A DNA stretch of 64,000 bases from Chrysemys picta bellii. Its lineage: Eukaryota. The position numbers and the translations under genes are program-made. Each line of letters starts with the position of its first letter. Positions within the stretch are counted from its first letter, which is position 1. Below, one piece after another: positions 11,682 through 50,067 of this stretch. The stretch covers positions 18,662,001-18,726,000 of the forward strand of contig NC_088810.1 of NCBI RefSeq assembly GCF_011386835.1, given 5' to 3'. The notes under the pieces are model-generated. The model was not told the origin of the DNA. It searched no databases and saw nothing but the letters and a program-made list of their open reading frames with translations.

Positions 11682-13112
11682 GAGTAGAGTACGCTGAGCT
11701 TCATGCATCTCAGCTGCTAGAGAAAGGAACGGAAACATGCGGGAGGAGGTGGCGTATTTTTTAATGAGCAACATTTAGAATTACAGCTTCAAAGCGAGGA
11801 GTTAGTATCAAACCAGGCGGCATGTGCAGGCTCCATGGCTGGGGGAGCCCCTCCCATTGATAAAACATTGTTACTGAGAGAATACAGACGGGTGTTGGCC
11901 CAAGACCCTGTGGATCGAGCCCTTTAGGAAAAGCAGCAGTCTCCCTCCAGGACTGGGATGCGGAGAGAGCCTGACCTCACACAGCTCCGTCCAGACACAG
12001 TTTCCCAAGATCTCTCTCACCATCAAGGGTCTGGTTCGTTTTGTGACTTCCTGCTCTGTATAGGCCGGATGGACGAGCGGGTTAATTTTCAGTTACATTT
12101 TGGAACGGAGCCACATGCAGCAGCAGTGAAGAGCAGTAAGAAGCAGTAAAACCGACCCACAGCTTTTACAGAAAGTCAACACCTTACAGGATGGTCCTGT
12201 CATTGAGCTCGGCAGTGAAACAGCTGTGAGTGTCCAGGCTTGGATCCCCGTGTGGGCTACGATTTCCCCCTTTTCCCTTTCACTGGTCGTTGCTCCCTGC
12301 TCTGGTTGGGATTCCTTGAATCAAACTCCAGTTGGGCATGAACTGTTTGACCCTGTTTGACAACATTTAGCAACATTAGACATCTCCCTGCAAGGTTAAT
12401 TAGTAAAACTTCGATGGATTTGGACACAACAGTCAGTTACATTTACAAACTGATTGTTAAACTGTAATTAAAATTCCTCTGTCCAAACAGTGCACGTCAT
12501 TAGCACTGAAACCATCATGGGAATCTTGCTTTAAAAGTTCAACACGTGGCTGAAAAAGGCGTTTAGGATTGAGACAGTTTTTCATCTGCCCATGAACTCC
12601 TCTAAGTCTGCTGCTTTCACTCTTTGACTGAATTTCCAAAACTGACGGAAAAGGCCAAATCCAGGCTTAGCAGAATTACAGGGGTATTAGAACTGCCTGA
12701 ATCCTAAATTCACTTGTTTTGAAGCCTCCGTTTTTCTTCACCATTTACAGCTGTTTTCTGACCAATTTATACCCCAGCCCAGATTATCCTCCCACTTCAA
12801 TGGGAGTTGTGCAGTTACAACTGAATGGCTAACCAGGCCTCTGCTGTGTAATTTACATCACTGGTTACATCCCAATGGAATTTGCCCAGAGATTCCCATG
12901 GGAGTTTCACCTGCTTATTTCAGGCAGAAGTTTGCCCTGTGTGATAACGCAAATGATGAGTGATAGAAATTGTGTGTCAGCCATCAGATGCACTGGCGGT
13001 TCCAAGCACCGAGCCTGGCTGAATACAGCACTCGTCTCTACAGAAGAGCTGCTGCGTTACATGAGTGTAGGAAGGAATAAATGTTCAATAGGGACGAACA
13101 GAAAGAACTGAG

Positions 13113-13959
13113 TAGGGTTACCATACGTCCGGATTTTCCCGGACATGTCCGGCTTTTGGGGGCTCAAATCCCCGTCCGGGGGGATATCCCCAAAAGCCGG
13201 GCATGTCCGGGAAAATCCGGAGGGAGGGAGGGATTGGCCGGGGCCTCTTTGGCCGGGGCCGGTGCGGGGCTGGGCCGGGGTCGCGGGGCCGGGGGCATGG
13301 TGCCGGGCCGGGAGCCGGGCCGGGCGCGCGGTGCCGGGGTCGCAGTGCCGGGCCGGGCTGGGCTGGGCGCGGGGCCGGGCGGGGAGCAGGGGGCGCGGTG
13401 CCGGGAGCCGGTCCTGGCCTGCGGGGCCGGGCCGCTGGGGGGTGCACTGGGCTGCGGAGCCGGTCCGGGGTCGCGCCGGGCCGCGGAGCCGGGCCGCTGG
13501 GCGGTGCGCCGGGCCGGGCCGCTGGGGGGTGCGCGGGGCCGGGGGGGTGCGCCGGGCCGCAGGGCCGGGGGGGTGCGCCGGGCCGGGAGCCGCGGGGTGC
13601 GCTGAGCCGGGGGGCCGGTCCGGGAGCCGGTCCGGGGTCGCGGGGCCGGGGGGTGCGCCGGGCCGCCGGGGGCCGGCCGGCAGTGCTGGGCGGGCCGGGG
13701 GTGGTCGGCCGGGGCCGGCACCCCAGGGCCCGAGCCGACCCAGGCTGGAGCCGCCGGGGGGGCCAGCCTGGGCCGCACCTCCTCCTCCCCCCGCCCCTTA
13801 CCTGCTTCAGGCTTCCAGCGAATTAAATGTTCGCGGGAAGCAGGGGAGGGGGCGGAGACTTTGGGGAGGGGGCGGAGTTGGGGCGGGGGCGTGGGCGGGG
13901 CTGGGGGCGGGGCCCCGTGGAGTGTCCTCCATTTGGAGGCACAAAATATGGTAACCCTA
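13113..13959. mobile_element. hAT-type element with extremely GC-rich internal tandem repeats
   Basis: Perfect TIR tagggttaccata / tatggtaacccta; 8-bp TSD gaactgag (13105-12, 13960-67). Confidence 0.9.
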
Positions 13960-14065
13960 GAACTGAGAGAACTGTTTTCAATTATTTTGTGAGAAATCAG
14001 CCCCACTATTAATAGGGCTGCTGCTACCTCTCCACACCTGGGGCGGACTGTAGTGTGTTGATTAC

Positions 14066-16887
14066 CTGGAGTAGAACAGCAGTGACTCCAGGCCAGGCTC
14101 AGGGACACCATCAACACCACCAGGGAAATCACCACTGCATAGCGCAGCGTCTGCGCCACACACCCGCTGGGATGGGCTGTGGAGGAAGCGGACACCAGTG
14201 GACCATCAGGAGGTGAAAGAATCTTTTTTGAAACTTTTCATTAAACCCTTTGGTTTTAACTTCCAATCCCAGCTCTGTATTCACCTCTCCCCAGTAGTTA
14301 TTATTTAATTCTTTACAGTGCTTTATAGGTACAATCTGGGTGAAAGCTGCTCTAGAAATCCGAGCTACATTGTCTTGGGGTCTCTCTAATGTCTCAGTTT
14401 AGCTTTCCCCAAATTCTCTGCAAATCTGCCTACTTTTAATTATGACATAAAATATTCCAGCTTTCTGGGATGGAAAGTTACGTAGAAGCAACTCGGATTG
14501 TGGCCACTTGACACCTATTTCACATCTGAATCTCCATTAGCCTCAAATATCATATCACTCACCTGCAGGATACCTGGTACTTTTCTTCACACTGCTGCCA
14601 GAAGAGTTGAATTTGACTTCACAGGTGAAATTCTTCCCACTGGTCCAGGTGTCCATGGGGACGCTGATGTGATTTATGAGGGTTAAAGATCCATCTCTTG
14701 CTTTCAATGAGCGCGTCAGCCCCAGTTCCTGCAGCTCCCCAGAAACACTCCAGGAAACACGGACTGGGCTGGACACTCCATGGATCACACAGGCCAGATT
14801 CGCTGTCCCAGTGACTTGAATATCATGTGGAAATGGGACCAGAAGCATCACCCAGCTGCTGTTGGTATAACTGTCTGAGCAGAAGGAGGTGGAGAATTCA
14901 GTGTGATGATCAGATGAGCTGCAGACTGATTAAAGATGTTAATCTTTCACTAAGACATTAATTCAAAGAAAAAAAGCTATTGAAGAAGAAGGAACTATGA
15001 AATCACCACACCAAGACTAAACTATAATATAGCACAATACATATTTACATTAGCCAGAATGGAAATTGTGTGCTCTTTTATCAAGAGATGCTCTCTTGAG
15101 AACATTTCATTAAATTGAAATATAGTTTCATGCAGTCATGGCTCTTAGGGTGGAAATATTCCCCTCCTGGGTGCCCTGAATAGTCACAGATTAACTTCAA
15201 TAGTTTTTTGCTGGCACTTTCAAGTTGTAACCTTTTTGATATAAAATATATCTGTATGATATTCCTTCTGTACTCATCGCATTTAATGTTTAGCTGATCT
15301 TTTTGGTTTAAAGTATGCTTTCCCTTTAGCCCTTCATCACTAGTTATGGTATCTAATTACATTTTACTGGAAACATGCAGGGCTAGCCCTAGACCAGAGC
15401 TAGGCAACCTATGGCACGCGTGCCAAAGGCGGCACACGAGCTGATTTTCAGTGGCACTCACACTGCCCGGGTCCTGGCCACCGGTCTGGGGGGCTCTGCG
15501 TTTTAATTTCATTTTAAATGAAACTTCTTAAACATTTTAAAAACCTTATTTACTTTACATACAACAATAGTTTAGTTATATATTAAAGACGTACAGAAAG
15601 AGACCTTGTAAAAACGTTAAAATGTATGACTGGCATGGAAAACGTTAAATCAGAGTGAATAAATGAAGACTCGGCACACCACTTCTGAAAGGCTGCCAAC
15701 CCCTGCCCTAGACCAAAGGGTGCCCCAGGCGAGGCGCGCCCCACCTCTCCATTTGTTAAACTTTTGAATACCTTATTTTTTATTGCATTTGTAGCGCATT
15801 TCACGACTTTGCATGCATGATTTATCCCTGTCATATAAGCCGATAAATTTGCATGCTAGGATCTGTAAATCTGTATTGATTCATGCTCTGTATAAGCAAA
15901 ATAAAAAATACGTTTCCTCTGAGCTAATAGAAACTTTTAAATTTAACTTTTAAATGTACTTACATCAAGAAATGGAACTGTGCACCAACACTGGGTGACC
16001 AGTGTTAAATAGTGTTACAGTCGGTGACAGCCTTAGAATGTTAACCCTGGTCCTTTAGTTCAAAGGGTTGCTTTTCTCGCCTTTGCCCTCGCAAACTGGA
16101 AAAACAGCACCTGAACCTGGCACACTCCAAGCCCAACACCCCAAGGGGTCACTGGGATCACCTGCCCCTAAATCCGGCTCTGGGAACATGAAATATGCTT
16201 TGTCAATCAGTTATTAATGTCCTCCAACAAGCTATTGTTCCTTACCTCCAACAATCAGTGTGGATCCATTCCCGAAAAGCAGGTAGCTGCTGTCTATATA
16301 TGCACAATAGTAAATGCCAGACTCAGTCTTTTGGACGTTGCTGATTTCCAGTGTCGAGCTGTGTGTCTCGTGTTTGCAAGCAAATTTACTTACATTTTGA
16401 TCATCCAAACAGCACTTAATGCAGGTGGGTGTCTCGCCTTCTCGTCTCAAATACCAAAACATTCTACTTCCTTCCAATTTCTCTTTGGAAGAACAGTGGA
16501 TCTTTGCGGTGTCACTAACTTCAACAAACTGGATCCGCTGAGTCTGGTACAGAAATAACTGCACTCCTAGCACTGGAGAAATAAAATATCGTTATAGTCA
16601 GTGTCCGTCAGGTCTCCAAGTGACACAGATGGACTGGATAGCTCAGCCATAGAAATTACTTAATCTGATAACATCTACGCTCTGCAGCCTAAATGCTAAA
16701 AAAAATGGCTATAACTTTGTACAAGTGAATGGAAATGCAATTACAATCCAGCAAAAGTCTCCAAACTATCATAGATATTCAACACTGATGTCCTATTAAA
16801 GGAGGCTGTTTTCTCAATTCCAAATTTTAATACAAACGTTTTACCTAAGGAAGATAAAACAAGATATTCGGCAAAGATCATTTTCAT
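14066..16887 (-). CDS. PRARP: B1: type-B V(J)-C1-TM receptor with divergent Arg-containing TM; cytoplasmic exon(s) not identified
   Basis: Exons: 16887-16845 (MKMIFAEYLVLSSL); 16572-16246 (V, YYCAYIDSSYLLFGNGSTLIV); 14874-14563 (C1, NLACVIHG..VSW..FTCEV); 14176-14066 (AHPSGCVAQTLRYAVVISLVVLMVSLSLAWSHCCSTPG). All open with canonical splice sites. Confidence 0.82.
15395..15705. mobile_element. hAT-type element in the B1 V-C intron
   Basis: Ends cagagctaggcaacc / ggctgccaacccctg; 8-bp TSD ccctagac (15387-94, 15706-13). Confidence 0.85.
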
Positions 16888-17009
16888 AAAAAAAGTAAAA
16901 TAAAATCCTGACACACTGGCCCAAAGGCTGATACCTAGTGCACTGCTGCAGTGACTGGGTTCAGTGTCTCGGTTATGTCCAGTGAGGAACGCCTCCGAGG
17001 AGGATGTGC

Positions 17010-17020: not shown

Positions 17021-18620
17021 ATACTAGAGGGGTGGGTTAAAGACTCTACAAAGGGTACAGCATTTCTTGTAGAATTTCTCTGCATTCGAATGGCACAGGG
17101 GTGTACTATAATGATTTAGAATAATTTTAACATCCAGAACATGGATGATCTATGTAAACAAACCCACCTGATTTCGGAGCACAAGTCCCATTGACTTTCA
17201 AAGGAGAATGCTCCTAAATCACTTAGTTCTTTTGATGGCCCCAACCTAAGTCTCTTCCCAGCCTTCCATGTTTGGTCCATTATTGTATCATATTTCTTGG
17301 TGCTACAACACTGACCTGTAATGAACATTTGGAGTCTCGTCTTGGAGGACTTAAATTGCACCTTTAATCATCAATCTGAAAGCTCCGCCATGTTTGAGAA
17401 ATAAGACAGTGAAGGATACAATTTTCAAAAGTGACTTAGGGCCAGATTTTCAAAGGTATTTAGTTGCCTAAGGATGCAGAGAGGCACCTAGTGGGATTTA
17501 CAAACATGGCTAAGCGGGTCAGGGGGCCTCACTCTTACCAAAGTCAATGGAAGCTAAACACCTCACTTGCCTCCATTTGGATCTAGCAATGGACTGGCTA
17601 AAAATGAACGGAACGTGGCTGGTTAGAGAGCTGCATCTGGCTCTACAGCGTATACAGAGAATTAAAGCGTATCTGTCAGTGACCCTTCTGAAACAGTGGG
17701 CAATGGAGGGCAACACGGGCTAGCGAGTACAGCCATTGGCTCAGAAAAGACGAGATTCCCTAGGTGCTTTGATAGCATCTTCTTAGCCCACACCCCATTT
17801 TTTAGGCTGCACTGACTGGCTGAAACTCCCTTAGCAAAGTGGGGATCGTTATATCACAAACCCCTTCCAGGCAACGCTCTAATGCTGGGGACCATCTTCC
17901 TTCCCTTCCTTTCCCCTCTCCCACTCTCATGCTTGGGAAGCCACCTGGGCTAAATTCTGCAGTCCCTGACTGAGGCAACGTTAAGTGGAAGCAGGAGTTT
18001 GGCCTGACGAAGGACGACTGGACAGGCCAAGATTCTGCCTGATTTCTAGCCCAAGGGCATTACTGACAATGACACAGCTTCCCCTTTGCACCAATGTAAA
18101 GAGGAGTTTAGAGGAGCATAAATTACACTCACCCCCACTTCCAGGCCCCTGGGCGTTACCATGATGGACAGGGGCTTAGTGCAAATGAGAATCCGGTCCC
18201 CAGGCTCGCTGTTAAGGGGCTGAAGATTGTCAGTGGTCATACAGATAAGACCATAGAAATCATAACGCTATTCGAGCAAAATTTCTCCCCAGCCCAGTTC
18301 CTGTAAGGGCCTGTTATCACCCTCCCAGTAACACTGATTGACAATGGCACAAAGCCCTATTTACTGCTCTAAGGTTCCCAGCAAAAATACTTTACAATGT
18401 GCAGTGCTTTAAGGAGCTGATCCTAACAGCAGCTGAGCACCCACCACTCCCCTTGACTTTGCTGAGTGTGGCGGGTGCCCAGCATATCACAGCAGGTGTC
18501 TCAGCACCGTGCAGGATTGGGCCCTTACAGTGTATACAGAAATCCCTTCATGCACGGTGGGGGTGGAGCGGGGCAGCTGTCTGACAGCCCCACAGCAGCA
18601 CGGCGCAGTGCCTTAGGGCA

Positions 18621-18630
18621 GGAAGTGAAA
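18621..18630 (+). promoter_or_regulatory. Candidate ETS-IRF composite element (EICE) upstream of B1
   Basis: GGAAGTGAAA matches GGAAnnGAAA; identical at 26306-15 (upstream of B2) and 52487-96 (upstream of B4). Confidence 0.45.
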
Positions 18631-19277
18631 AGGAGGAAAGTAGCCAAGTGTAGCTACAGGAGCAATTTTACACTCATGTAATTACCAGGGCTGGGGCAGA
18701 AAATGGATTTTGCATCTCACACCAATGTTAAGATATCGAAAAATGTTCCCATCTCAAATTGGGATGAAAAGTCAAAATCTCAATAATTTTCTTGAACCAA
18801 ATATTCAAAAATAATTTTTGGTTTGGATGAGTGGAGGCATTTTCTCTTCACAGTTTTGCAATGTTTCCTTTCAATTTTGAGCATATTAATTTTTTTTTTA
18901 AATGCAACTCTAATTAGCTTAAATTTCGAAGCAAGACGTCATTGCGAACTGGGAAAACTGGAATTTTTCATTTTGTAAAATATCAAAATGAAAAATTTCA
19001 ACCATTTGGAAAAACCTTTTTTTCAAATAAAAAAATCTTTATCAAAACCAACCCACAAACATTTCCCAAATGGGAAGGTGGCCAAGGCACCAGAGCCAGC
19101 TGCTCTCGTCTTGCACAAAGCATCATGGGATTGCCAGGGAGTTCAAGTCACCATTTATTCCAGCCCTCGGGTTTAAGTTTCAGTGGAAATCTGGGCCCTC
19201 CTGTAGCCCTGGTTCAGTTCTCAGGGCAACATGGGACCAGGTTCAGACCGTTAGTCATTCATTTTTTATTGGCGCTC

Positions 19278-20632: not shown

Positions 20633-23600
20633 TCAGGGTTTTACATGTTTCCCTCTGGCCGGTCGCTGCATCTTCTGCCTGTTGCGATTCCGCGAATCAA
20701 AATCCAGATGAGCGTATAAGATCCCACCCTGTTTGGCGACAGTTAGAAAAATTAGCCACCTCCTTGTAAAATGAAGGGATACAAGCTGAGACAGAATCAG
20801 ACATCCAAGTGAGTTTAGCCTGATGAAAAATTCCCTCATCTCTGATTCTCCTGCTTGTCCTATAAATGGTGCGTGTTATCGGAATGGAAACCAGCGCTGG
20901 ATTCTGACTTTAAGAATCAGCTACTGACAATATTTGGCCAGATCCAAACCCCATGTCAAAGGACAGTCTCCTACTGAGGTCCAGTGAGCTTTGGATCAGG
21001 CCCGTAGAACCTGTCACTGGAAAATCTTCATGTGCTTTACAAATATAATTTCTTACAGCTCTTTATCTTATAAGTGCCAGAAATGTTCCCAGCTGTACAA
21101 AAACCCTGTAAAGGGCACAGTCAGAACCAATAAAACATCATAAGTCTTGTTATCCACTATTTATGTAGGGGGAAACTGAGTCACAGAGCACTAAGTGACT
21201 TGCCCACTATCCTACATTAACTTAGGAGCAAAGTTAGCAGTAAAACTCTGTGCTCTCCTTCAGCTACTTCAAAAGCTAGATCTCACTTTCACTTCCTCCT
21301 TCCAGAACAATCAATTTAAGTGCCAAATATATGAAGTTGATGGATTAGAAATGCCTGAGACAAACACATTGATTTAGACAGAGATAGTTTGCAAAGAGCC
21401 GTACCTGGTGCTCCTCTGAAGATGGAGATGCTGAGATCCTGGGCTGGAATCCTGGAACAAACAAAGACAACAGTAAAAGTTCCTCTTCCACAGTCACTCC
21501 CCCAGCTGTAGTTCATTGACTAATGGTGCATCCGAGCTGTGGGTGCGCAGGGCACCACCATGCATGGCACATGGAGAGAGGCTACTGCTCTTTGTGAACT
21601 ATACACAAGGTGTCTGGGCCATGGGCGGTAGAAGTATTTTCTACATCGCTCCCTTTGTCACGGAGAACAAAGCCGTTCTCCCGACACAGGAAATTCAAGT
21701 TTCAGAAAACAAACATTCTGAGATCAGTGCTGGCAGTTGTGACATTTGCAGCATGTTCATGTGTTGGACGGGACAGTTACAAGCAGGGGAGTGGGATTTC
21801 TCTCTGCGGGAGAGTGTCTGGGCTGGGCTGTGTTTATTACCTAGAGTAGAAGGGCAGAGGGTCCAGACGAGGCTCAGAGACACCACCAGCAGCAGCAGAC
21901 CAGCACCAGCCGCAAGGGGCACAATGTAATGTGAGCACTCGCTCGCAGGGGCTGTGGAGGAAGCAAAAAAAACAGACAAAAATGCCTGACTTGAGCAAAG
22001 GGGGTCGTGATGCCACCACATCCAGCTCTTCTCTACTGACCCCACTTCACCCCGGGCCTTAACCCCTGAGAAGCGAGGATACAGGAGACTTCAGCACCTT
22101 TCAGTCTCTCTGCTGTGCCCTTGGCATTAGGCCGATGATTTCTCCTGTAATCAGAATCTTCTCTGCACCTCTGCCACCTACAAAATCCTCCCTGTAGGTC
22201 TCTCCTCACCTCATCGCCTCTCCACATCTCACCAGAAAACAGCTCTCTGTGCCCTCAAGTGCCTCTGTTCCCTTCTCCCTCTGACACTGGCTGTCATTTA
22301 ACTCGGTAGGGTGCTTTACAGATACAGCTGGTGTGAAAGTTTCAATAGGAAGTTACTGTCTTGTGAATATTGCAATTCCTCTTGTCTCCTTTCCCAAAAT
22401 TCTCTGCACATCTACGAAATCCTCTCTGGAGGTCTCTCTTCATCTCATTGCCTCTCCATCACTTTGCATCTCTCATTGGAGAGCACGTCTTCTCAAATGT
22501 CTCTTAATTTCCCTTTATTTATTATTTAACTCTCAACAGGGATTCATATGTACAATCTGGGTGAAAGCTGCCCTAAAGATCACAACCAAATTGTCTAGTG
22601 ATCCCTGTAATGTAAAGTTACCTTTCCCCAAATTCTCTAGAGAAATTCTAACTAATAAGACATAGACTATTCCAGCTTTCTGTGATGGAAAGTTACGTAG
22701 AAGCTGCTCTGAGTGTGGCCACTTGACACCCATTTCACATCTGAGTCTCCCTTAGCCTCAAATATCATATCACTCACCTGCAGGATACCTGGTACTTTTC
22801 TTCACACTGTTGCCAGAAGAGTTGAATTTGACTTCACAGGTGAAATTCTTCCCACTGGTCCAGGTGTCCATGGGGACGCTGATGTGATTTAGGAGTGTTA
22901 AAGATCCATCCTTTGCTTTCAATGAGCGCGTCAGCCCCTGTTCCTGCAGCTCCCCAGAAACACTCCAGGAAACATGGACTGGGCTGGACACTCCATGGAT
23001 CACACAGGCCAGATTTGCTGTCCCAGTGACTTGACTGCCATGTGGAAATGGGACCAGAAGCATCACCCAGCTGCTGTTGGTATAACTGTCTGAGCAGAAG
23101 GAGGTGGAGAATTTAGTGTGATAGTCAGATGAGCTGCAGTCTGATTAAAGATGTTAACCTTTCACTCAGACACAAGGTGGGTGAGGTAAAATCTTTTATT
23201 GGACCAACTTCTGTTGGTGAAAGAGACAAGCTTTGAAGCTTACACAGAGCTCTTCTCCAGGTCTGGGAAATAAATTCAGAGTGTAATTTCCCGGATCTAC
23301 AGGCGAGCTCTGTGTAAGTTCAAAAGCTTGTCTCTCGCACCAACAGAGCTTGGTCCAATAAAATATTTGATCTCACCCACCTTGTCTCCCTTATATCTTA
23401 GGGCCAACACAGCTACAACAACACTGCACAAATCTTTCATTAAGACATTAATTAAAAAAAAAATCTGTTGAAAAAGGAAGTATTAAATAACCACGCCAAC
23501 ACCAACTAGGATATAACGCAATAAATATCCACAGTTGCTAGAAGGAAAATTGTGTGCAATTTTATAAAGAGATGCACTCTTAAGAATATTTCATTAACCC

Positions 23601-24538
23601 AAAATATTGTTGTATGCAGTCATGGCTCTTAGGCTAGGAATATTGCCAACCTACGTGGCTTGAACGGTCACAGAGAAACTGCAAAGGTTTACTTTCAACA
23701 TTTTCAAATGTGAAGTTTTCTAGTTATGAAATATACACCTATTATATTTCTTCTCTGCCCATAGCATTTAATGTTCAGCTGATCTTTTTGATCTACAGTA
23801 TGCTTTTCTTTTAACTGTTTCTCAGTAGCTAAGGTATAGTGTTACATTTTAATAGGAACATGAAATATGCTTTGTCAATCAATTATGAGTCTCCTTAAAC
23901 AAGCTGTGGTTCCTTACCTCCAACAATCAGTGTGGTTCCATTTCCAAAAAGCAGGTAGCTGCTATATATAAATGCACAGTAGTAAACGCCAGTCTCATTC
24001 TTTTGGATATTGCTGATTTCCAGTATTGAGAGGTGTGTCTCATGTTTGCAAGCAAATTTACTTACATTTAGATTATCCAAACAGTACTTAATGCAGGTGG
24101 GTGTCTCACCTTCTCTTCTCAAATACCAAAACACGTCTCCTCCTTCCATTTTTTCTTTGGAAGAACAGTAGATCTTTGCAGTGCCATTAACTTCAACGAA
24201 CAGAATCCGCTGTGTCTGGTACAGAAATAACTGCACTCCTAGCACTGGAGAAATAAAATATGTTTAGTCACTTTCCATCATCAAGTCTCCAACAGCCATA
24301 TATAAACTGGCTCGTTCAGAATATACTTGGTCTGATAATATTTATGCTCCGCTAAAAAAAACCTGCTTTAACTTTGTACAACTAAATGGAAATGCAATTT
24401 ATATCCAGCAAAAGTTTCCAAACATATCATAGATATTCATCACTCATGTCCTACTGAAAAGGCTGTTTTCCCAATTCCAAAGCTTAACGCAGACGTTTTA
24501 CCTAAAGAAGATAAAACCAGATACGCGGCAAAGATCAT
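20633..24538 (-). CDS. PRARP: B2: intact type-B V(J)-C1-TM receptor with ITIM, about 309 aa
   Basis: Exons: 24538-24502 (MIFAAYLVLSSL); 24244-23918 (V); 23089-22778 (C1); 21951-21841 (APASECSHYIVPLAAGAGLLLLVVSLSLVW..); 21451-21405 (GFQPRISASPSSEEHQ); 20728-20633 (GGILYAHLDFDS..KP*). 930 nt in frame. Confidence 0.88.
23172..23430. mobile_element. Palindromic Penelope-like insertion in the B2 V-C intron (shared with B4 at about 48693-48940; related copy at about 63865-64000)
   Basis: Long inverted arms (aaggtgggtgag..ttttattggaccaac..agagctc / gagctct..ttggtccaataaaa..ctcacccacctt), flanked by a degenerate ~16-bp duplication of aatctttcactaagac. B1 has the empty site. Family assignment is inferred. 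Confidence 0.6.
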
Positions 24539-28177: not shown

Positions 28178-31100
28178 TCAGGGGTTTATGCTTTTCCCTC
28201 TGGCCGGTCGCTGCATCGTGCGCCCGTTGCGATTCCGCGAATTGAAATCCAGATGAGTGTATAAGATCCCACCCTGTTTGGTGACAATTAGTAAAATTAG
28301 CCCCTCCTTGTAAAATGAAGGGATACATGTTGAGACAGAACTGAACATCCAAGTGAGTTTAGCCTGATGAAAAATCCCCTCTCATCTCTTATTCTCCTGC
28401 TTCTCTTATAAATTGTGTGTTATCGGAATGGAAACCAGCGCTGGATTCTGACTTTAAGAATCAACTACTGACAATATTTTGTCAGATCCAAACCCCAAGT
28501 CAATGGACAGTCTCCTACTGAGGTCAGTGAGCTTTGGATCAGGTCCCTAGCACCTTCCACAGGAAAATCTTCATGTGCTTTACAAATATAATTTTTTATA
28601 GCTCTTTATCTTTTAAGTGGCAAAAATATTCCCTTGTACACAAAAACCCTGTAAAGGGCACAGTCAGAACCAATAAAACATCAAACTTCCCATCATCCTT
28701 ACACAGTAAGTTTTGTTATCCTCTTTTTACATACCGGGAAACTGAGTCACAGAGCAATAAGTGCTTTACCTACTATCCCATAGTTAATTACCAGCAAAGC
28801 TAGCAATAAGACTCTTTGGTCCTCTTCTGCTACGCCAACAGCTAAACCTCATTTTCACCTTCTCCTTCCAGAATGATCAGTTTAAGCACCAAATATATGA
28901 ATATATGAAGTTGATGGCAGACACATTGATTTAGACAGAGACAGTTTGCAAAGAGCCGTACCTGGTGCTCCTCTGAAGCTGGGGGTGCTGAGATCCTGGG
29001 CTGGAATCCTGGAACAAATAAATATAACAGTAAAAGTTCCTCTTCCACAGTCACTCCCCCAGCTGTAGTTCATTGACTAATGGTGCATCTGAGCTGTGGG
29101 TACGCAGGGCACCACCATGCATGGCACATGGAAAGAAGCTCATCAGAAAGGCTAGTGCTCTTTCTGAACTATACACAAGGTGCCTGGGCCATGGGCAGTA
29201 GAAGCCTTTCTACATCGCTCCCTTTGTCACGGAGAACAAAGCCGTTCTCCCGACACAGGAAATTCAAGTTTCAGAAAACAAACAAACGTTCTGAGATCAG
29301 TGCTGGCAGTTGTGACATTTGCAGCGTCTTTATTACCTAGAGTGGAAGGGCAGAAGGGTTCAGACGAGGCTCAGAGACATTAACAGCAGCAGCAGACCAG
29401 CACCAGTCACAAGGGGCATGATGTAATGTGTGCACTCCCTGGCAGGGGCTGTGGAGGAAGCAAAAAAAAAAAAAAAAACAGACATACATGTCTGACTTGA
29501 GTAAAAAGGGTCAGGTTACCCAGTGGTGGATTAGCCACTGGGCTGATGGAGCCCATGCCTAGGGGCCCCGGCCAATTGGGGGCCCCCAGAAAAATGGGCA
29601 CCCCATGCCCTGACCCCTGGTAGGAGCGCTGGGCAGGTGGATGGGGCGGGGCAAGCCCCCATGTCCCAACCCTGCTCCCAAGCAGTAGCGCCAGACCAGG
29701 CAGAGTGGAACAGACTGTGGGTGGAATCAGGTGGACTGCGGTGGAAGGGGCAGAATTCGGGGGGGACAGGCAGAAGGGGCAGCATGGGGGTGGGTCTGCA
29801 GGCAGAAGGGATGGGGAGGGCCCCCCCTTGCTCTGGCCCAGGGCCCCATGAAACATTAATCCACCTCTGGTACAGATGCCACCACATCCAGCTCTTCTCT
29901 CCTGATCCTCATTTCATCCCAGGCCTTAACCCCTGAGGAGTGAGGCTGCAGGAGCCTTCAGCATCTTTTAGCTTCTCTCTGTTGTGCCCTTGGCATTAGG
30001 CCGATGATTTCTCCAGTAATCAGAATCTTCTCTGCACCTCCTGCCACCTACAAAATCCTCCCTGTAGGTCTCTCCTCACCTCATCGCCTCTCCACATCTC
30101 ACCAGGAAACAGCTCTCTGCGCCCTCAAGCACCTCTGTTCCCTTCTCCCTCTGACACTGGCTGTCATTTAACTCGGTAGGGTGCTATACAGCTACAGTGG
30201 GTGTGAAAGTTTCCACAGGAAATCACTGTCTGTGAGCACTGCAATTCCCCTTTCCTCCTTCCCCAAAGTTCTCTGCAGCTCTGCCGGCTCCTACATATTA
30301 CCCGACATTTCACAACTTTCTCTAATTGCAAATTGCATTAAAATCACTCTGACCATGGACACTTTACATGTCTAATTACCGTCATAATTATCATAGCGCC
30401 TCGGAGTCCCAGCCATGGACCAGGCCCTGACTGGGCTATCGATCTGACTCCCCTCTACTCCCAGACCCTAATATAAAATCACTCACCTTCAATATACCTG
30501 GCAATTTTCTTAACACTCTTGCCAGATGAGTTGAATTTAACATCACAGGTGAAATTCTTCCCACTTGTCCAGGTGGCCACAGGGACGCTGATGTGATTTA
30601 TGAACACCAAGGAGCCATCCTTTGCTTTCAGCGAACGCGTCAGCCCCTGTTCCTGCAGATCCCCAGAAATACTCCAGGAAATTTGGACTGGGTTGGACAC
30701 TCCATGGACCACACAAGCCAGATCAGCCGTCCCGGGGGAGAGGAGGCTGTGGGGAGATGGAGCCAGAGGCAGCACCCAACTGCTGGTGGTGTAACTGTCT
30801 GAGCAGAATAAAGCAGAGAGTTCAGTGTGACGCTCAACTGAGCTGCAGTTTGATTCAGGGGGTTACTCGTACAAGATGAAAGTAGCTCAAAGGATAAATG
30901 TGTTGTATAAATAAGAAAATATTAAGAAACTGAAAAATCAAATCCACCCAAACTAACCACATATTTGCACTTGGCAGAAGGGAAACTTGGTGCTATCTTA
31001 GAAACTGATGCAGTCCTAAGAACATTTCCTAATTTCAAGACATTCTTTCATTTAAACATGGCTCTTAGGTTAAAAATATTCCCAGCGTGTGCCCTGACTA

Positions 31101-31953
31101 GCAATAAGACAGAACATTTTCAAGAGTTCATTTTCCCTATTTTTCTAGTTTTAATTTTTTCTCTTCTTTCAGCAATTACTGTTGACTTGCTCTTTTTCGG
31201 TTTCAAACAGTCTGTCTTTGAACAATGGAATCTTTGATAAGCAGTCAAACCAGCTTTTTACATTTTAACGTGCACATGAGCTACATTAGCATTATCATTC
31301 CATTTCTTTCCTAATCATCCAGTTGTTTCCTTACCTCCTACAATCAGGGTGGATCCGTTGTCGAAAGTCAAGAAGCTCATGTATGAATCAGTACAGTAAT
31401 AAACCCCCGAGTCATTCCGTTGGGCATTATAGATTTCCAGTGTCAAGTTGTGTCCTTCCAATATGCAAGCAACTTTACTGACTCTGTGGTTATCGGAGCA
31501 TCTTTTAATTAACATGGGGGCCTCCCCTTCCCGTCTCCTGTACCACTGAGCTGTCATACCTCTGGATACAAACTGTTTTTTGGAAGAGCACCGGAGCTTC
31601 GCTGTATCATTAATGTTCACAAACAGGAACGGCCGTAGTTGGTGCAGAAATAACTGCCCTTGTACCACTGTAGGAATAAAAGAGGGTGTGTTATTAGAGT
31701 CAATATTCAGCAGGTCACAATCTGCCCTAAATAATCAGGATAATTCAGAATTTAACCAAATGCAATCAGATTCCATTGTGCAAAAGTAAATGGAAGCGCA
31801 TCTAAACTGCAGCAGAATTGTCCTAAGCTACCAGATAACATGAAAGCCGATGTCCAAGTGAAAAGACTCCTTTCTCAATTCCAAACTTAATGGTACCACT
31901 AATACAAAAGCGTTACCCATGAAAGACAAGAGCAGGTATTTGGAGAACAGCAT
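28178..31953 (-). pseudogene. PRARP: B3: type-B receptor with premature TGA at the end of the TM exon (pseudogene or tailless 256-aa product)
   Basis: Exons: 31953-31917; 31667-31335 (V, FDNGS); 30798-30487 (C1); 29448-29337 (TM; TGG>TGA at 29362-29360 plus a 1-nt insertion, 112 vs 111 nt); 29008-28962; 28273-28178 (GGILYTHL..). Ectodomain exons are open. Confidence 0.75.
29521..29869. mobile_element. TIR element (hAT-like) in the B3 C-TM intron
   Basis: Ends cagtggtggatta / taatccacctctg; absent in B2 and B4; TSD not clear. Confidence 0.55.
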
Positions 31954-33997
31954 GATTGTAACAAGCAATATTCGGAACGATGAAATTTAAAAGCACCCGT
32001 CTGGTACGCTGCTCAAGTGCAAAGGGTCCAACACCCTGGTCAGTTCTGCTGAGGAACGCCTCCTGGGGGAAGTGCTGTGGTGACAGATACTTTTCACAGG
32101 GGCTTCTTGTCGGCTGCGGTTGCATTTGACTCAAACATGGATATATTATCATGATTCAGAATAATGAAATGACCACCAGGACGTGGCACAATGTACAATA
32201 TGCAAGAAATAATGGCAGTGTGGCTACAGCGGCATGGGCGGTGGCTCAGGCTAGCCGTACTTGTCCAGAAGGTCGGGCACGATTGCATTGGAGAGGGTAG
32301 CCCGGGTTGCCACCTGTGCCGCCGTGGCCACACCGCTCTCTCTCAGTGCGCTACATTGAGCGGCTTCCCTCCCTGCTGCAGGGTAGACGTGCCCTAAATG
32401 GGAGCTGGGCTCTTCTGGAAGTGCGGCCCCAGCTGTGGGTGATGAACAGCTGAGAAACGGGCTCCTCCCTGCGGCCTCAGTATTTTACCCACCGCTGCGC
32501 CTTATTGCTTGACAACATGATACTGACCAGTAATTTGGGACCAGATTCTCAGCTGCTATAAAACAGCATCACTCAGCTGAAGCCAATGAACTGATGCTGA
32601 TTTACCCTAGTTGAGGATCTGGCCCTCGGAGGACTTTAAGGGAATCCTGAACGCTCACCGTGCGGCTCGCTTGAGAAACGAGACCAGGAAATCCCTGTGG
32701 CTGAATTTCCGGAGTCCAGAACAGCTCACGCTTTGTCACCTGCCTCCAAACTCTGCAGTTTCTGACTCTGAATTTTTCCACACCCCAAACTCCCATTGAT
32801 TCGAGTGGAATAGTGCTGGGTGCACCAGGAACGCAGGGTCTGGCCTTGTTAGCCCAGAGTTTGTGGGGCTACAAGGGGCATCGTGGGTGCCCTGCAAACA
32901 CTTCATGCAGCAAGTTGTTCTGCTTCATATTTATAATCATAATGATTCCGATCTTGTCAGGAGTAGATCCCAACGTGCTTTACAAAAGGAGGTCAGTATC
33001 ATCATCATCATCATCCCCATTGTACAGATGGGGAAACTGAGGCACAGAGAGGGCCATTGACCTGCCCGGGATCACCTCACAGGAGAGACAGGAATAGAAC
33101 CCAACTCTCCCAAGCCTCAGTCCAAAACTGCCTAGTGGATAGAACTAATTATTAACATGGTCTTGTTGATAATTAGCGATTGACCTATTTTCTCAATGTC
33201 TCTGTGTTTGTGCCATGAAATTTCATTTGTTTCACGCTGCTGAAAGGTAAATTCCAGTTTTTGTGGTTAGTTCAACTGTTCTGCTTCACCTTTACTCTAA
33301 CCATCCACTGGCTACAGAGGAATAGAGGGGAGCAGTTTATACTTTCTTGGTAACCAAAAGCAGGGGGATAGAACTGAAAAGAAGAAATCCGCCCCAGCTC
33401 TTTGCTCGGTGAACAAACAAAACAAAAGCGTCAAAATAAGTGGGTAGAAACTGACCACAAAAGCAAGTGCAATTATCCGAGCAAACAGGTTTTGATCTTT
33501 TTTTAAACCATTGCTCCTTTGCAGCAAACATGCCTCTATGTCCTGTAGCCTGCGGTTTTCTTAAGATCGGTTTCAATTTGCTTTCTTATCAAACATAATG
33601 TAGAAATAAAAATCAACCAAAACAAGTTACAGTTGCTTTCTCTGTGTCTCGGATTTTAATAGACTTGCAAAATGAACGTCTATCAGTTGTGTGTGACTGG
33701 GGGCAAAAGTCTTTAGGGTACATTTTCAAACATGCCTAAATGACTTACGTGCCTAACTCCCATTGGTTCTGAAAACGCTGCTAGTCACCTACCTGGATCT
33801 TTAAGCACCTAAATACCGTTGAAACTCTAGTTCTGAGGGCCCTAGATACCACTGAAAAATAAATCAATGGTACTTAGTCTTCCAAGTGCCTAAATCACTG
33901 TTGAGAGCAAGACGGGTTCCTAAGTGATTTAGGTGCCTCTACTGCAATTTGGCTAAATTTCTGTAACAATTAGTGTTAGGATTATAATTTTATCATT

Positions 33998-34445
33998 AAA
34001 ACAACGAGGAGTCCGGTGGCACCTTAAAGACTAACAGATTTATTTGGGCATAAGCTTTCATGGGTAAAAAACCCACTTCATCAGATGCATGGAGTGAAAA
34101 TTACAGATATAGGCATAAATATATATTGGCATATGAAGAGAAGGGAATTACCTTACAAGTGGAGAACCAGTGTTGAAGGCCAATTCAGTCAGGGTGGATG
34201 TGGTCCACTCCCAATAATTGAGGAGGAGGTGTCAATACTAAAAAAGGGAAAATTGCTTTTGTAGCAAGCCAGCCACTCCCAATCCCTATTCAAGCCCAAA
34301 TTGATGGTGTTAAGTTTGCAAATGAATTGTAGCTTTGCAGTTTCTCTTTGAAGTCTCTTTTTGAAGTTTTTTGTTGAAGGATGGCTACTTTTAAATCTGT
34401 CATTCAGTGTCCAGGGAGATTGAAGTGTTCTCCTACTGGCTTTTC
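33998..34445 (-). mobile_element. Penelope-like (GIY-YIG) retroelement 3' fragment
   Basis: Minus strand encodes PVGEHFNLPGH..DLKVAILQQ..LQRETAKLQFICKLNTINLGLNRDWEWLA, followed by the ggtggcaccttaaagactaac terminal sequence. Confidence 0.8.
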
Positions 34446-36118
34446 TAGGTTACCATTCCTGATGTCTGATCTGTGTCCATTATGTCCAAGTAGAGCTGTG
34501 ACCACGTGGGTTGCAAGGCCCGTAGCTAGGAGCTGGGCCCAGCCTCACTGGCCAGGAGCCGTCCCCACAGGAGTTATGGACTTTCCTCAGATTCATGGTT
34601 TCCGTGAACACCACGCCAAAATCACAGTCTGAATTCTAGCTAAGCTGATGTGCCTGATCCAAGGACCTTTGTATGGGACGATGCCAGTGTCCCTGTTTGA
34701 AGCACATCTATGGCACTAGGCCCCAAGTTAAGCAAAGGTCTTTTAATCTAGCTCTTTACTTATTTATCCTCACCCCCCATCCCCACTGCAGTGTCGGGAG
34801 GAATTTATCCCCATTTTACAGCTGGGGAGTGGAGGCCCAGAGAGACTTGGGGTAACATGTTCAAAAGCCCCTAAGTGATTGCGAGGCAAAGTCCCACTTT
34901 CAACAGGGACTAAGGCTTGAAAGTCATTGGGATGTAAGTCATTGGCCCTCGGTCACACACGGAGCCTGTGGCAGAGCAGGGGTTTGAACGGAGAGCCCCT
35001 AAGTCCCTGCCCAGCACCTTGACAACCGCACCGTCCTTCCTCTCTTCAAGCATGTGCTGAAGTCCCAGTGAACCAGTTAGGCCAGGAGAGGTGTTTGCAC
35101 CACATTCAACTTTCCCTGGAGCTAGGTATGAATGAGACACGGGTCAGACCTTGGCCCACATCCTGGTCCCTTGGTGCTGCTCCTGTGACACCAAGGGAGC
35201 AGGAACTGACTGAACCTGCCAGGGGTGTAAAGGCAGCAGAGCCAGCCCTTGCAGCCAACAGCCCTTGCAGCCAACAGCCCTTGGCATGTGAGGTGTGACC
35301 GGAGCAGTCTGCACTCGGGGTCTCCCCAGTTGGCAAATGGCTCTTTGGGAGTCATGACCTGCTGGTGCAGTTTAGAGCAGCCTCCAGGCTGGGCCAGCTC
35401 ATAAATGGCCAGAAGATCAACTTGGGATAACAGGAGAGTGAGCGCACAGAGGCTCTGGCCCTGATTTGCAGTACGATTTTATTGAGGCTGAGGTTTGAAA
35501 GGGCAAATTCGATGCTCAATTGATCTGGCCAATCAAATCCCCGATGGAGCTTTGCAACTCTCCGCCTTAATGTTCAAGTCAAGACAAGCCGCAGAGATGA
35601 CCGTATTCCAAACTGCATGTGTGACAACTGGCTAGAGGGGATGGATTTGGAATCTCTTAGGGGGCATTTCACTTTGTTCTCTCTATAATGCATCTTGCAC
35701 ATTACGTTAAGGAACATGCATTATGCACATATCTGAAATAAGTGTCCTAAAAGTAGGTTTTGCCCCAAACTTTCCAGAGTGGGGTGACTCCACCACACTT
35801 CCATATTCTAGCCCCATCCATTGCTTTCCCAGAGGGCCCCACCCCAAGTCGTTTTCTTAATCTATCATAATAACTGAACACACAAGCTAAGGTGTATTTT
35901 TGCTAATATTACCCCTTCCATGCTGCACAATGAGCCTGTTTGTTGGTTTCCTCCATCCTTTGCTAAAATCATGGTATATGCATCTTGGTGATTATTACAT
36001 TCGCCACATACAATAGAGAAGTTCGATAAAAATATCAAATACTCACGCTGGAAGATTGCAAGCTGACTCGACTTTTATTCTTAGAATCCAGAACAACAAA
36101 GAGTAACAAAAAACAAAG

Positions 36119-36322
36119 ACAACAAGGAGTCCGGTGGCACCTTAAAGAGTAACAGATTTATTGGGGCATAAGCTTTCGTGGGTAAAAACCTCACTTGTGC
36201 ATCTGAAGAAATGAGGTTTTTACCCACGAAAGCTTATGCCCAAATAAATCTGTTAGTCTTTAAGGTGCCACCAGACTCCTTGTTGTTTTTGTAGATACAG
36301 ACTAACACGGCTACCCCCTGAT
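36119..36322. mobile_element. Penelope-derived hairpin insertion
   Basis: ~75-bp inverted arms (about 36119-36193 vs 36212-36286) of the same terminal sequence; absent at the A1 paralogous site (about 4080). Confidence 0.7.
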
Positions 36323-49100: not shown

Positions 49101-50067
49101 CAAAATATAGTTTCATGCAGTCATGGCTCTTAGGTTAGAAATATTCCCAACCTGGGTGCCCTGAACAGTCTCCAAGAAACTTCAATAGTTTATTTTTGGC
49201 ATTTCCAACTTTTGACATTTTTAATTATAAAATGTGTGTGTATTATATCCCTTCTGTACCCATAGCATTTAATGTTTAGCTGATCTGTTTCGCTTAAAGC
49301 ATGCTTTCCTTTGAACCATTCATCAGTAGCTGTGGTATCTTGTCACATTTTAATAAGAACATGAAATATGCTTTGTCAATCGGTTATTAGTCTCCTTAAA
49401 CAAGCTATATGGTTCCTTACCTCCAACAATCAGTGTGGATCCATTCCCGAAAAGCAGGTAGCTGCTGTCTATATATGCACAGTAGTAAATGCCAGAGTCA
49501 GTCTTGTGGACGTTGCTGATTTCCAGCGTCGAGCTGTGTGTCTCGTGTTTGCAAGCAAATTTACTTACATTTTGATTTTGATAATCCAAACAGCTCTTAA
49601 TGCATGTTATGGTCTCACCTTCTCTTCTCAAATACCAAAACATTTTACTTCCTCCTTCCAATTTCTCTTTGGAAGAACAGTGGATCTTTGCGGTGTCACT
49701 AACTTCAACAAACTGGATCCGCTGAGTCTGGTACAGAAATAACTGCACTCCTAGCACTGGAGAAGTAAAATATTGTTAGAGTAGGTTTCCATCAGGTCTC
49801 CAACTGCCACAGATGGACTGGATAGCTCAGCCATAGAAATTACTTAATCTGATAACATCTACGCTCTGCAGCCTAAATGCTAAAAAAAATGGCTATAACT
49901 TTGTACAAGTGAATGGAAATGCAATTACAATCCAGCTAAAGTTTCCAAACATATGATATTCAATTCTGATGCCCTATTGAAGAGGCTGATTTCTCAATTC
50001 CAAAGCTTAATGCAGAAGTTTTACCTAAGGAAGATAAAACCAGATACTCGGCAAAGATCATTTTCAT
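46146..50067 (-). CDS. PRARP: B4: intact type-B V(J)-C1-TM receptor with ITIM, about 314 aa
   Basis: Exons: 50067-50025; 49756-49421 (V); 48610-48299 (C1); 47473-47363 (ALPRGCSYYIMPLAAGAGLLLLLVSLSLVW..); 46961-46915; 46241-46146 (GGILYAHLDF..KP*). 945 nt in frame. Confidence 0.88.

Follow-up and report, generated by a model that had tools for sequence, protein, structure and literature searches.

A short intronic segment of the receptor gene B1 of Chrysemys picta bellii was very probably copied from the gene B4 by non-allelic, non-crossover gene conversion in the Chrysemys lineage, as judged from comparisons of the two genes with their orthologues in other turtles. The segment lies in the intron between the leader and V exons, where 129 consecutive bases of B1 are identical to B4, and it is bounded by sequence in which B1 follows its own orthologues instead. 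Further V-exon patches were probably transferred as well; however, the segment of the V exon that encodes the CDR1-like and CDR2-like loops remained of the B1 type, and the event would have had no demonstrable effect on the protein.

Receptor Genes and Comparative Material

The window, that is, the whole stretch of 64,000 nucleotides (64 kb) that was analysed, is occupied by a cluster of non-rearranging V(J-like)-C1-TM receptor genes, the models of which have been automatically annotated as "immunoglobulin kappa light chain-like". Further Chrysemys B-type genes (P0161, P0293, and P0294) are found beyond it. The exons, introns, and tracts described here all lie on the minus (-) strand; the exons of the window were searched singly, without being joined into spliced models, and full-length comparisons were made with database proteins. 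In B1, the coding part of the leader exon (16845-16887; MKMIFAEYLVLSSL) is followed by the leader-V intron (16573-16844), by a V exon with phase-1 boundaries at 16246..16572, which is supported by its open frame, its splice sites, and a Pfam V-set match (E = 8.6e-9), and by a C1-set exon inside an open frame at 14558..14929 (Pfam C1-set, E = 3.2e-10). The V exon of B4 (49421..49756) agrees exactly with the Chrysemys picta bellii RefSeq model P0215, and the comparator paralogue B2 is represented by the in-frame core of its V exon (23919..24239), which is identical to RefSeq model P0205. In what follows, B1 and B4 are abbreviated as cB1 and cB4 in Chrysemys and as eB1 and eB4 in Emys, together with mB1 for Mauremys and kB4 for Malaclemys. 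Two family names from the literature, UrIg and CD28, were considered and rejected, as neither is the B-gene family.

At the protein level, the identity of B1 and B4 is 90.9% for the V exon and 89.8% for the C exon, and the B1 V is 95% identical to that of Trachemys P0177. In the C exon, dS among B1, B2, and B4 amounts to 0.06-0.08, with just 5 orthology-pattern sites in 400 columns. An earlier note on this DNA had called the V domains of B1 and B4 near-identical, which overstates a similarity of 90.9% at the protein level that is interrupted by 14 nucleotide substitutions and by two in-frame indels (3 and 6 bp), which cluster at 16402-16468; the V peptides that it quoted are indeed common to both genes, B2 having AFIYSSYLLFGNGT instead. 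It had also placed B4 with B2 in the distal part of the gene, and this assignment holds: downstream of the C exon, B4 and B2 have a common TM/tail region of 86-97% identity, as against at most 50% for B1, and the V-C intron of both contains a palindromic insert (23172-23388 and 48689-48903) that B1 does not have. The C-terminus of the B4 model P0215 (...GGILYAHLDFDSRNRNGRTMQRSAKGEHVKP) holds an I-x-Y-x-x-L motif, the ITIM ILYAHL. The TM exon of B1 reads ...CVAQTLRYAVVISLVVLMVSLSLAW..., with an arginine in the TM segment, and no ITIM exons accompany it. Arg-TM genes with short tails also occur in Emys (P0208), Mauremys, Gopherus, and sea turtles, the only groups in which a search with the B1-type TM segment returned Arg-TM models, none being returned for Trachemys, Malaclemys, or Chrysemys. 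Similar ectodomains in neighbouring genes, an ITIM in B4, and a charged TM segment in B1 correspond to a paired-receptor arrangement, in which B1 would be the activating-type and B4 the inhibitory member, with opposite signalling. The stretch occurred in none of the RNA runs.

The Identical Intron Tract

Conversion tract 1 occupies 16624..16752 in B1, the acceptor, and 49808..49936 in B4, the donor; all 129/129 bases match, a mismatch stands directly at either side, and the minimal converted span is 16648-16744. Next to the tract, cB1 and cB4 match at 75/93 positions in the intron part 5' of it and at 34/43 positions 3' of it. B2 matches B1 at 87/129 tract positions (~67%) and has two indels, so the earlier description of an intron stretch of 129 bp that is identical in B1 and B4, with B2 differing, is accurate. 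Among the variable sites of the B1/B2/B4 alignment, 26 consecutive sites have B1 equal to B4 and B2 different, a run that was reached in 0 of 20,000 site shuffles (p < 5e-5), while the longest runs of the other two pairs comprise 5-6 sites (p ~0.3-0.4 by site shuffles). The folding of 16600-16780 as single-stranded DNA gave z = 0.05, and no hairpin or structure that could account for a hotspot was found in that interval.

Direction and Timing of the Conversion

Positional orthologues of B1 were identified in Emys (L008, 95.6% over 3.4 kb) and Mauremys (L009, 92% over 4.3 kb), and those of B4 in Emys (L006, 95.3% over 4.9 kb) and Malaclemys (L010, 96%), the last of which stops 1.3 kb short of the B1 leader. 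Emys L005 (P0208) was considered as the B1 orthologue, with B1 as a hybrid gene, and was ruled out, L008 being a full-length collinear orthologue of B1.

In the 5' flank, over 170 bp, cB1 and eB1 are 100% identical, as are cB4 and eB4, and cB1 has no B4-type state. In the tract, cB1 matches cB4 at 129/129, kB4 at 128/129, and eB4 at 127/129 positions, compared with 118/130 for eB1 and 118/132 for mB1. B4-specific derived states are present in cB1 at 16744, 16707, 16706, 16678, and 16648; at the first four of these, eB1 and mB1 have the state of B2, P0187, and P0177, and the alternative is confined to the B4 orthologues and cB1, with the exception of scattered matches to the B4-type state in other paralogues at 16744 and 16678. 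When strict diagnostic sites are defined as those at which eB1 equals mB1 and differs from cB4 and eB4, which agree, cB1 has the B1-type state at 14 flank sites and the B4-type state at none, as against 0 and 4 in the tract (Fisher p = 3e-4); if eB1 alone represents B1, the ratios of B1-type to B4-type states are 22:0 and 0:11, respectively. The flank sites all fall in the unconverted leader exon and 5' part of the leader-V intron (16753..16887), where cB1 equals Emys B1 at 100%. Correspondingly, the trees unite cB1 with eB1 in the flank and recover a clade of cB1, cB4, and eB4 in the tract (support 96/93); congruent trees, which the earlier note had named as the outcome that would speak against conversion, were not obtained. 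An AU test of clade constraints on the 130-column tract gave p-AU 0.23-0.24, a value that carries no information here, as the rows of cB1 and cB4 are identical and were left free.

The direction of transfer can be read from both partners. In the tract, cB4 matches its own orthologues, at 127/129 positions in Emys and 128/129 in Malaclemys, and the donor copy therefore appears unchanged. Moreover, a G at 16648 is found only in cB1, in the B4 of Chrysemys and Malaclemys, and, among other paralogues, in Trachemys P0177, Emys B4 having T; because of this pattern, the donor would be the B4 type of Chrysemys and Malaclemys. A crossover is ruled out because B1 orthology returns three times behind the tract: in a 43-bp patch, halfway through the V exon, and immediately past its end. 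The excess identity is thus bounded, the phylogeny incongruent, the transfer non-reciprocal and without crossover, and no artefact is apparent. The earlier note had left a recent conversion and a crossover side by side: the conversion stands, as an event that is recent relative to the Chrysemys-Emys split, and the crossover does not. With Emys and Mauremys as the B1 references, the event can be placed at any time after the Emys split; the perfect identity alone dates it loosely, because local substitution rates are low, with 0 differences between orthologues in ~170 bp of flank.

Mosaic Structure of the V-Exon Region

The unconverted 43-bp patch (16581..16623) comprises the polypyrimidine tract and the 3' splice region, and cB1 and cB4 differ there at 9/43 positions. 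At 16607, 16603, and 16600, cB1 keeps the Mauremys-B1 states, and the states at 16599, 16595, and 16581 that are common to Chrysemys and Malaclemys B4, and not in Emys B4, are absent from cB1. A second identical block follows at 16469..16580 (112/112 against 49653-49764 of B4) and spans the final 8 bp of the intron, which contain the splice acceptor, before continuing into the V exon through FR1 to the start of CDR1. It holds no orthology-pattern sites and a single B4-specific synonymous state in cB1 (16481, GAG as against GAA elsewhere); with this one diagnostic site behind it, the block is probably a second conversion patch. Its identity could also be retained ancestry, B1, B4, and P0187/P0177 all being at least 98% alike there.

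The middle of the V exon (16402..16468), which covers the CDR1-like segment, FR2, and the CDR2-like segment, is distinct between B1 and B4 and contains 15-16 orthology-pattern sites. The 3-bp indel of the CDR1-like segment and the 6-bp indel of the CDR2-like segment are common to the B4 of Chrysemys, Emys, and Malaclemys; slippage after the conversion was considered for both and ruled out, as Emys and Malaclemys B4 have them too. The 3' part of the V exon (16246..16401), with FR3, the CDR3-like AYIDSSYLL, and the J-like FGNGSTLIVG, is an exchange zone in which cB1 and cB4 match at 151/155 positions. B1 and B4 have no fixed differences in it, orthology-pattern sites are absent, and at two sites (16337 and 16326) the shared state is species-specific; at 16307, the T of cB1 is otherwise found in Malaclemys B4 alone. 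Immediately beyond, 16246-16178 contains 8 orthology-pattern sites, with complete identity (100%) between the orthologues.

The course of events that best explains this mosaic begins after the split of Chrysemys and Emys, when ~100-129 bp of the B4 leader-V intron was very probably copied into B1, 33 kb away, and shorter V-exon patches on each side of the CDR1/CDR2-like segment were probably transferred too. The transfer was patchy: B1 sequence persisted in the 43 bp around the splice acceptor and in the CDR1/FR2/CDR2-like segment. We infer that the event is one footprint of a recurrent short-tract exchange, which is limited to the V exon and ~180 bp of the preceding intron. It is much less certain that this exchange keeps the framework and the CDR3-like loop alike in activating-type and inhibitory members while selection or chance keeps the CDR1/CDR2-like loops apart. 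Exchange has been seen at the same intron segment twice, from B4 to B1 in Chrysemys and between B1 and P0208 in Emys. The concentration of visible events in the leader-V intron segment may be a detection bias, because this segment is the most divergent among the paralogues and conversions are therefore easiest to see there.

Alternative Explanations

A donor other than B4, namely another B4-like or P0187-like Chrysemys paralogue outside the 64-kb window, is improbable. Candidates are at hand in the additional B-type genes mentioned above (P0161, P0293, and P0294), the cB1 V exon, taken as a whole, most resembles the P0177/P0187 type, and the states at 16620, 16607, and 16603 of the 43-bp patch are common to cB1 and Emys P0187; in the tract, however, the 129/129 matches with cB4 contrast with 109/129 for Emys P0187 and 104/129 for Trachemys P0177, and the B4-specific states occur in all three B4 orthologues. 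We give even less credence to the view that the similarity is ancestral and that no conversion took place in Chrysemys, the B1 genes of Emys and Mauremys having been overwritten by other paralogues. Exchange did occur in Emys, since Emys B1 matches the second Emys Arg-TM gene, P0208, at 127/129 positions of the tract, and Emys-specific states exist at 16737, 16727, and 16659, where Emys B1 alone differs. Yet eB1 and mB1 agree at 16744, 16707, 16706, and 16678, which would take two independent replacements with the same states, and the G at 16648, restricted among B1 and B4 copies to cB1 and the B4 of Chrysemys and Malaclemys, would be left unexplained.

An assembly artefact, whether a collapse or a misjoining of paralogues, is very improbable, although paralogous families do break short-read graphs and the read evidence consists of Logan unitigs of only ~100-300 bp. 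The main source is the independent run X4, which carries the same organism label and comes from a different sample and study, with a single-copy depth of ~33. A unitig of X4 over 16641-16752 ends exactly at 16752 and has a depth of 75, about twice the single-copy value; another, over 16723-16931, shows 0 differences from the window at a depth of 34 and continues across 16752/16753 into B1-specific sequence, for which the unitigs have a depth of ~33. The same junction unitig is present in run X2, which has a second organism label, and the flanks of the tract match Emys B1 at 100% and 88%, as a real B1 would; the collapse that the earlier note had raised as a concern is thus argued against by these short unitigs. 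Variants at 16737 were also recorded in runs X2, X9, and X14, in unitigs that do not distinguish the gene copy. Least credible of all, and in fact already refuted, is an unequal crossover that produced a B1/B4 hybrid gene with the similarity at its breakpoint. Rearrangement of this kind has a parallel in Malaclemys, where the B4 tail is joined directly to the orthologue of window positions 28941-18188 and the A2 and B3 V/C segment is missing; but B1-type orthology flanks each block (16753-16920, 16581-16623 in part, 16402-16468, and 16178-16246), and B1 is collinear from promoter to TM with Emys and Mauremys B1 at 92-96%. Conversion from B4 to B1 accordingly remains the preferred reading.

Effect on the Protein and Comparison with Known Systems

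The demonstrably converted bases are intronic, apart from one synonymous site (16481). The B1/B4 differences in the CDR1-like and CDR2-like segments are older than the Chrysemys-Emys split and escaped conversion, and the CDR3-like AYIDSSYLL is old as well, since Emys B1, Emys B4, and the inhibitory P0187/P0177 all have it. For the V exon as a whole, the best match of B1 is this other inhibitory gene (98% to Trachemys P0177), which is located beyond A1, outside the window. The event therefore had no demonstrable effect on the protein and left the likely ligand-contact loops unchanged. The proposal that conversion gave B1 and B4 similar specificity is not supported: the demonstrably converted bases are silent, and at 16402-16468 the orthologues of B1 and those of B4 have each retained their own states.

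Among paired receptors, conversion of the ligand-binding region is an established process in Siglec-11/16 (PMC5701461), CEACAMs (PMC2832619, PMC5112662), KIR2DS4 (PMC2768862), NKG2 (PMC3210942), and CD300A/C (PMC12447643). SIGLEC11 and SIGLEC16 resemble the turtle pair in that an inhibitory and an activating-type gene lie in one cluster, the 5' part with the ligand-binding Ig domain is converted while TM and tail stay distinct, and conversions recur in different lineages (PMC5701461). However, their tracts extend over kilobases and alter protein and expression, whereas the turtle tract is at most 129 bp, intronic, and silent, in a V(J-like)-C1 family rather than a sialic-acid-binding lectin. 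Similarly, the CEACAM1-related receptors of mammals and Xenopus have an N-terminal IgV exon that is homogenised within species between activating and inhibitory members, but there the whole ligand-binding domain co-evolves, while the CDR1/CDR2-like segment of turtle B1 and B4 stays orthologously distinct (PMC2832619, PMC5112662). The conversion with KIR3DL2 that produced KIR2DS4 (PMC2768862) and the homogenisation of the NKG2/KLRC ligand-binding domains (PMC3210942) are likewise short, non-allelic inhibitory-to-activating conversions in a tandem cluster of immune receptors, although that of KIR2DS4 altered ligand specificity and the turtle event has no attributable coding change. The best PDB sequence matches to the V-J-like and C1-set ectodomain are antibody light and heavy chains, TCR chains, and shark UrIg2 (PDB 9dmx; PMC12227049). 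This likeness is one of sequence similarity only, the turtle genes being germline-joined and membrane-bound, with an ITIM tail or an Arg-TM segment, in contrast to UrIg, which is secreted, has several C domains, and belongs to elasmobranchs.

Conclusions

The conversion from B4 to B1 adds a further case to a process that is well known, here in a V-C1 receptor family that has not been described before. A bolder reading, which we consider unlikely, is that exchange is confined to a V-exon cassette, which starts ~180 bp within the leader intron and ends at the donor site of the V exon, and recurs across genera while sparing the CDR1/CDR2-like loops, so that selection makes affinity-tuned pairs of a kind not described before in an antigen-receptor-like family; if this were true, framework and CDR3 would be matched, and CDR1 and CDR2 held apart, between receptors of opposing function. 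For annotation and tree building, the locus calls for caution, as exon-level trees blend orthology with concerted evolution. More broadly, this little-studied V(J-like)-C1 family of turtles evolves like the KIR, Siglec, CEACAM, and CD300 paired-receptor clusters, with short conversions between ITIM and Arg-TM members and with unequal crossovers that alter the gene content between genera.

Receptor Genes and Orthologous Loci

The minus strand carries the B genes, which consist of a leader exon and a V-set exon ending in the J-like FGNGSTLIVG, followed by C1-set and TM exons; B2, B3 and B4 have tail exons as well. B2 and B4 match exactly the Chrysemys picta bellii RefSeq models P0205 and P0215, respectively, which identifies the window as painted turtle. 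B4 ends with the ITIM ILYAHL; B1 lacks ITIM exons, and its different TM exon contains an arginine (…AQTLRYAVVISLVV…). As the earlier note had observed, B4 shares its TM and tail exons and the palindromic V-C intron insert with B2, not with B1. The V-C intron of B1 carries a private insert of ~750 bp (15427-16177) that is present in Emys and Mauremys B1 and absent from B2 and B4; within it, very high unitig depth at 15950-16100 in 4/4 sequencing runs indicates a dispersed repeat. Positions 12000-14000, in the interval separating the 3' ends of A1 and B1, are GC-rich (0.55-0.59) and of low complexity, with long, chance open frames rich in Pro/Ala/Gly/Arg; read-through from the B1 TM exon enters this stretch.

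Relatives of the family occur in turtles, alligators, one amphisbaenian and one caecilian, their annotation going no further than "immunoglobulin kappa light chain-like" or similar; in the PDB, antibody chains and shark UrIg2 match best by sequence, and a literature search for a description of the receptor family found none. Window exons were searched one by one, not as exon-joined queries, and orthologous turtle loci were found via full-length database proteins. These comprise Emys orbicularis B4 (L006; 95.3% identity to the window over 4.9 kb, situated between orthologues of A3 and A2), Emys B3-B2-B1 (L008; B1 at 95.6% over 3.4 kb, the match taking in both the Arg-TM exon and the private intron insert of 750 bp), Mauremys reevesii B1 (L009; 92% over 4.3 kb) and Malaclemys terrapin B4 (L010; 96%).

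The Identical Intron Tract

The identical intron stretch that the earlier note reported holds: 16624-16752 in B1 matches 49808-49936 in B4 at 129/129 positions, with mismatches at the immediate neighbours on both sides, whereas B2 matches B1 at only 87/129 with two indels. The tract lies entirely inside the B1 leader-V intron (16573-16844, 272 bp). When B1, B2 and B4 are aligned together, it comprises 26 consecutive informative sites with B1 and B4 in agreement against B2; a run of this length appeared in 0 of 20,000 shuffles, and the longest runs in the other pairs were 5-6.

Collapse of two copies during assembly, which would also leave an identical tract, was examined with Logan unitigs, which are short sequences, chiefly from run X4 (same organism label, other sample and study). 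A unitig over 16641-16752 has a depth of 75 and ends exactly at 16752, the B1/B4 divergence point; a 30-base (k-1) overlap links it to a unitig over 16723-16931 that shows zero differences, has a depth of 34 and extends into B1-specific sequence, other B1-specific unitigs having depths of 32-33. In run X2, which carries a second organism label, the identical junction unitig recurs. This pattern is expected from two real copies sharing the tract, and collapse is thus unlikely. At 16737, which is G in Chrysemys, Malaclemys and Emys B4, unitigs of other organism labels carry G>A, on contigs of otherwise B4-type (X2, X14) or B1-type (X9) appearance.

Direction and age are read from the orthologues. 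Upstream, at 16920-16753, Chrysemys B1 and Emys B1 are 100% identical, as are Chrysemys B4 and Emys B4, and Chrysemys B1 is B1-type at 14/14 strict diagnostic sites (22 with Emys B1 as sole B1 reference). Across 16752-16624, it matches Chrysemys B4 at 129/129, Malaclemys B4 at 128/129 and Emys B4 at 127/129, versus 118/130 for Emys B1 and 118/132 for Mauremys B1. At 16744, 16707, 16706 and 16678, Emys B1, Mauremys B1 and most other paralogues share one state, and Chrysemys B1 has the alternative state together with the three B4 orthologues (strict sites, flank 14:0 vs tract 0:4; Fisher p = 3e-4). Trees are likewise incongruent, placing Chrysemys B1 with Emys B1 in the flank and in a clade with Chrysemys and Emys B4 in the tract (support 96/93). 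Since the donor copy B4 is unchanged, the transfer ran from B4 to B1. Moreover, 16648G is shared by Chrysemys B1, Chrysemys and Malaclemys B4 and Trachemys P0177, and Emys B4 has T, so that the donor had the B4 form of Chrysemys/Malaclemys and the transfer took place after Emys had split off. With a local orthologue divergence of ~2%, ~4.8 differences would be expected in the 241 bp that show 0 B1/B4 differences if the event were as old as that split (chance of none ~0.008); with Emys and Mauremys as the B1 comparators, this argues for a clearly younger event. Of the "recent conversion or crossover" proposed earlier, conversion stands and crossover is excluded by B1-type sequence on both sides of the exchange zone. 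On this comparative evidence, the tract is best read as gene conversion of B4 into B1, with its direction and bounds established.

Extent of the Exchange Zone

A second block of B1/B4 identity spans 112 bp (16469-16580), takes in the splice acceptor together with the 5' portion of the V exon, and is separated from the tract by a 43-bp patch with 9 B1/B4 differences. In this patch, Chrysemys B1 retains B1 states, equal to Mauremys B1, at 16607, 16603 and 16600, and the states common to Chrysemys and Malaclemys B4 at 16599, 16595 and 16581 are absent from Chrysemys B1 and Emys B4. The 112-bp block has 0 orthology-pattern sites, that is, sites tracking gene identity across species; it is a probable but weakly supported second conversion patch, a grading set by the one B4-specific synonymous state in Chrysemys B1 (16481). 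The V exon middle (16402-16468) holds ~12 B1/B4 substitutions and two in-frame indels; its 15-16 orthology-pattern sites, both indels among them, imply that the CDR1-/CDR2-like B1/B4 differences predate the Chrysemys-Emys split and are unconverted. The final 155 bp of the exon contain 4 B1/B4 differences, none fixed, and two species-specific shared sites; the rare 16307T, found in Chrysemys B1 and Malaclemys B4 alone, suggests further exchange. Just beyond the V exon, 16246-16178 shows fully restored orthology (8 orthology-pattern sites). The zone of exchange accordingly comprises the V exon and ~180 bp of the preceding intron, with islands of retained B1 sequence.

Further Signs of Exchange among the Genes

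A second Arg-TM gene of Emys, P0208, lies 48 kb from the inhibitory P0172, and the two have almost identical V and C exons (L005:9962-10690 and L007:9962-10680). Of the 25 differences between them in the leader-V region, 20 sit at positions equivalent to 16737-16655, and there P0208 has the sequence of Emys B1. This is a second, independent exchange at that segment of the intron. Since the paralogues also diverge most from one another here, detection bias is possible; folding of the segment revealed no special structure. The C1 exon (14558-14957) seems to be homogenised among B1, B2 and B4, with dS of 0.06-0.08 vs 0.12-0.27 in the V exon, flanking introns ~15-20% divergent and 5 orthology-pattern sites in 400 columns.

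Malaclemys (L010:11887-15722 vs window 28941-46892) lacks A2 along with the V and C exons of B3, and its B4 tail region joins directly to the orthologue of window 28941-18188. The probable cause is an unequal crossover, in one lineage, in which the homologous tails of B4 and B3 recombined. The Malaclemys B4 gene also contains a 2.4-kb insert. A four-base cluster at 16427-16430 gives ETITC in Chrysemys and Emys B4 and the general-paralogue ETPTC in Malaclemys B4, probably a micro-conversion into the latter. Upstream of the leader exons of B1 and B4, at a distance of some 1.1-1.8 kb, 18001-18700 and 51100-51550 show 90% B1-B4 identity vs 82% in the next downstream segment, and few of the variable sites (21/90) are of orthology pattern; this is a further zone of exchange or else a regulatory block that has been conserved.

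Functional Reading

The earlier note also held that the B1 and B4 V domains are near-identical and that the event gave both receptors similar specificity. The peptides it quoted as common to both are correct; the domains, however, share only 90.9% identity (V-exon dS 0.116, vs 0.26-0.27 for pairs with B2). Because every base shown to have been converted is either intronic or synonymous, and the CDR1-/CDR2-like differences are older and unconverted, the event did not bring similar specificity. The CDR3-like AYIDSSYLL is common to B1, B4 and the inhibitory gene P0187/P0177 of Emys and Trachemys. Over the whole V exon, Chrysemys B1 is nearest to Trachemys P0177 (L003:10305-10625; 98% nucleotide identity) and Emys P0187 (L004:10308-10628), and the B4 V exon forms its own clade (support 97/98). 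P0177/P0187 has the CDR1/CDR2 indel states and the C-domain start HDIQVT of B1. Judged by sequence relationship, this inhibitory gene may be the real counterpart of B1. Emys P0187 is located beyond a duplicated A1-like block (P0208 locus, L005), so its equivalent in Chrysemys should lie beyond the start of the window and not within it.

The B1-type TM is also found in Emys, Mauremys, Gopherus and sea turtles, which, together with the V exon relations, marks B1 as a long-standing Arg-TM lineage whose V exon appears to trade short patches with several inhibitory neighbours. Conversion between paired receptors is documented for Siglec-11/16 (PMC5701461), CEACAMs (PMC2832619, PMC5112662), KIR2DS4 (PMC2768862), NKG2 (PMC3210942) and CD300A/C (PMC12447643). 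The exchange between these putatively paired turtle receptors fits this general picture and, for an undescribed receptor family, adds a new case of an evolutionary process that is already well known.
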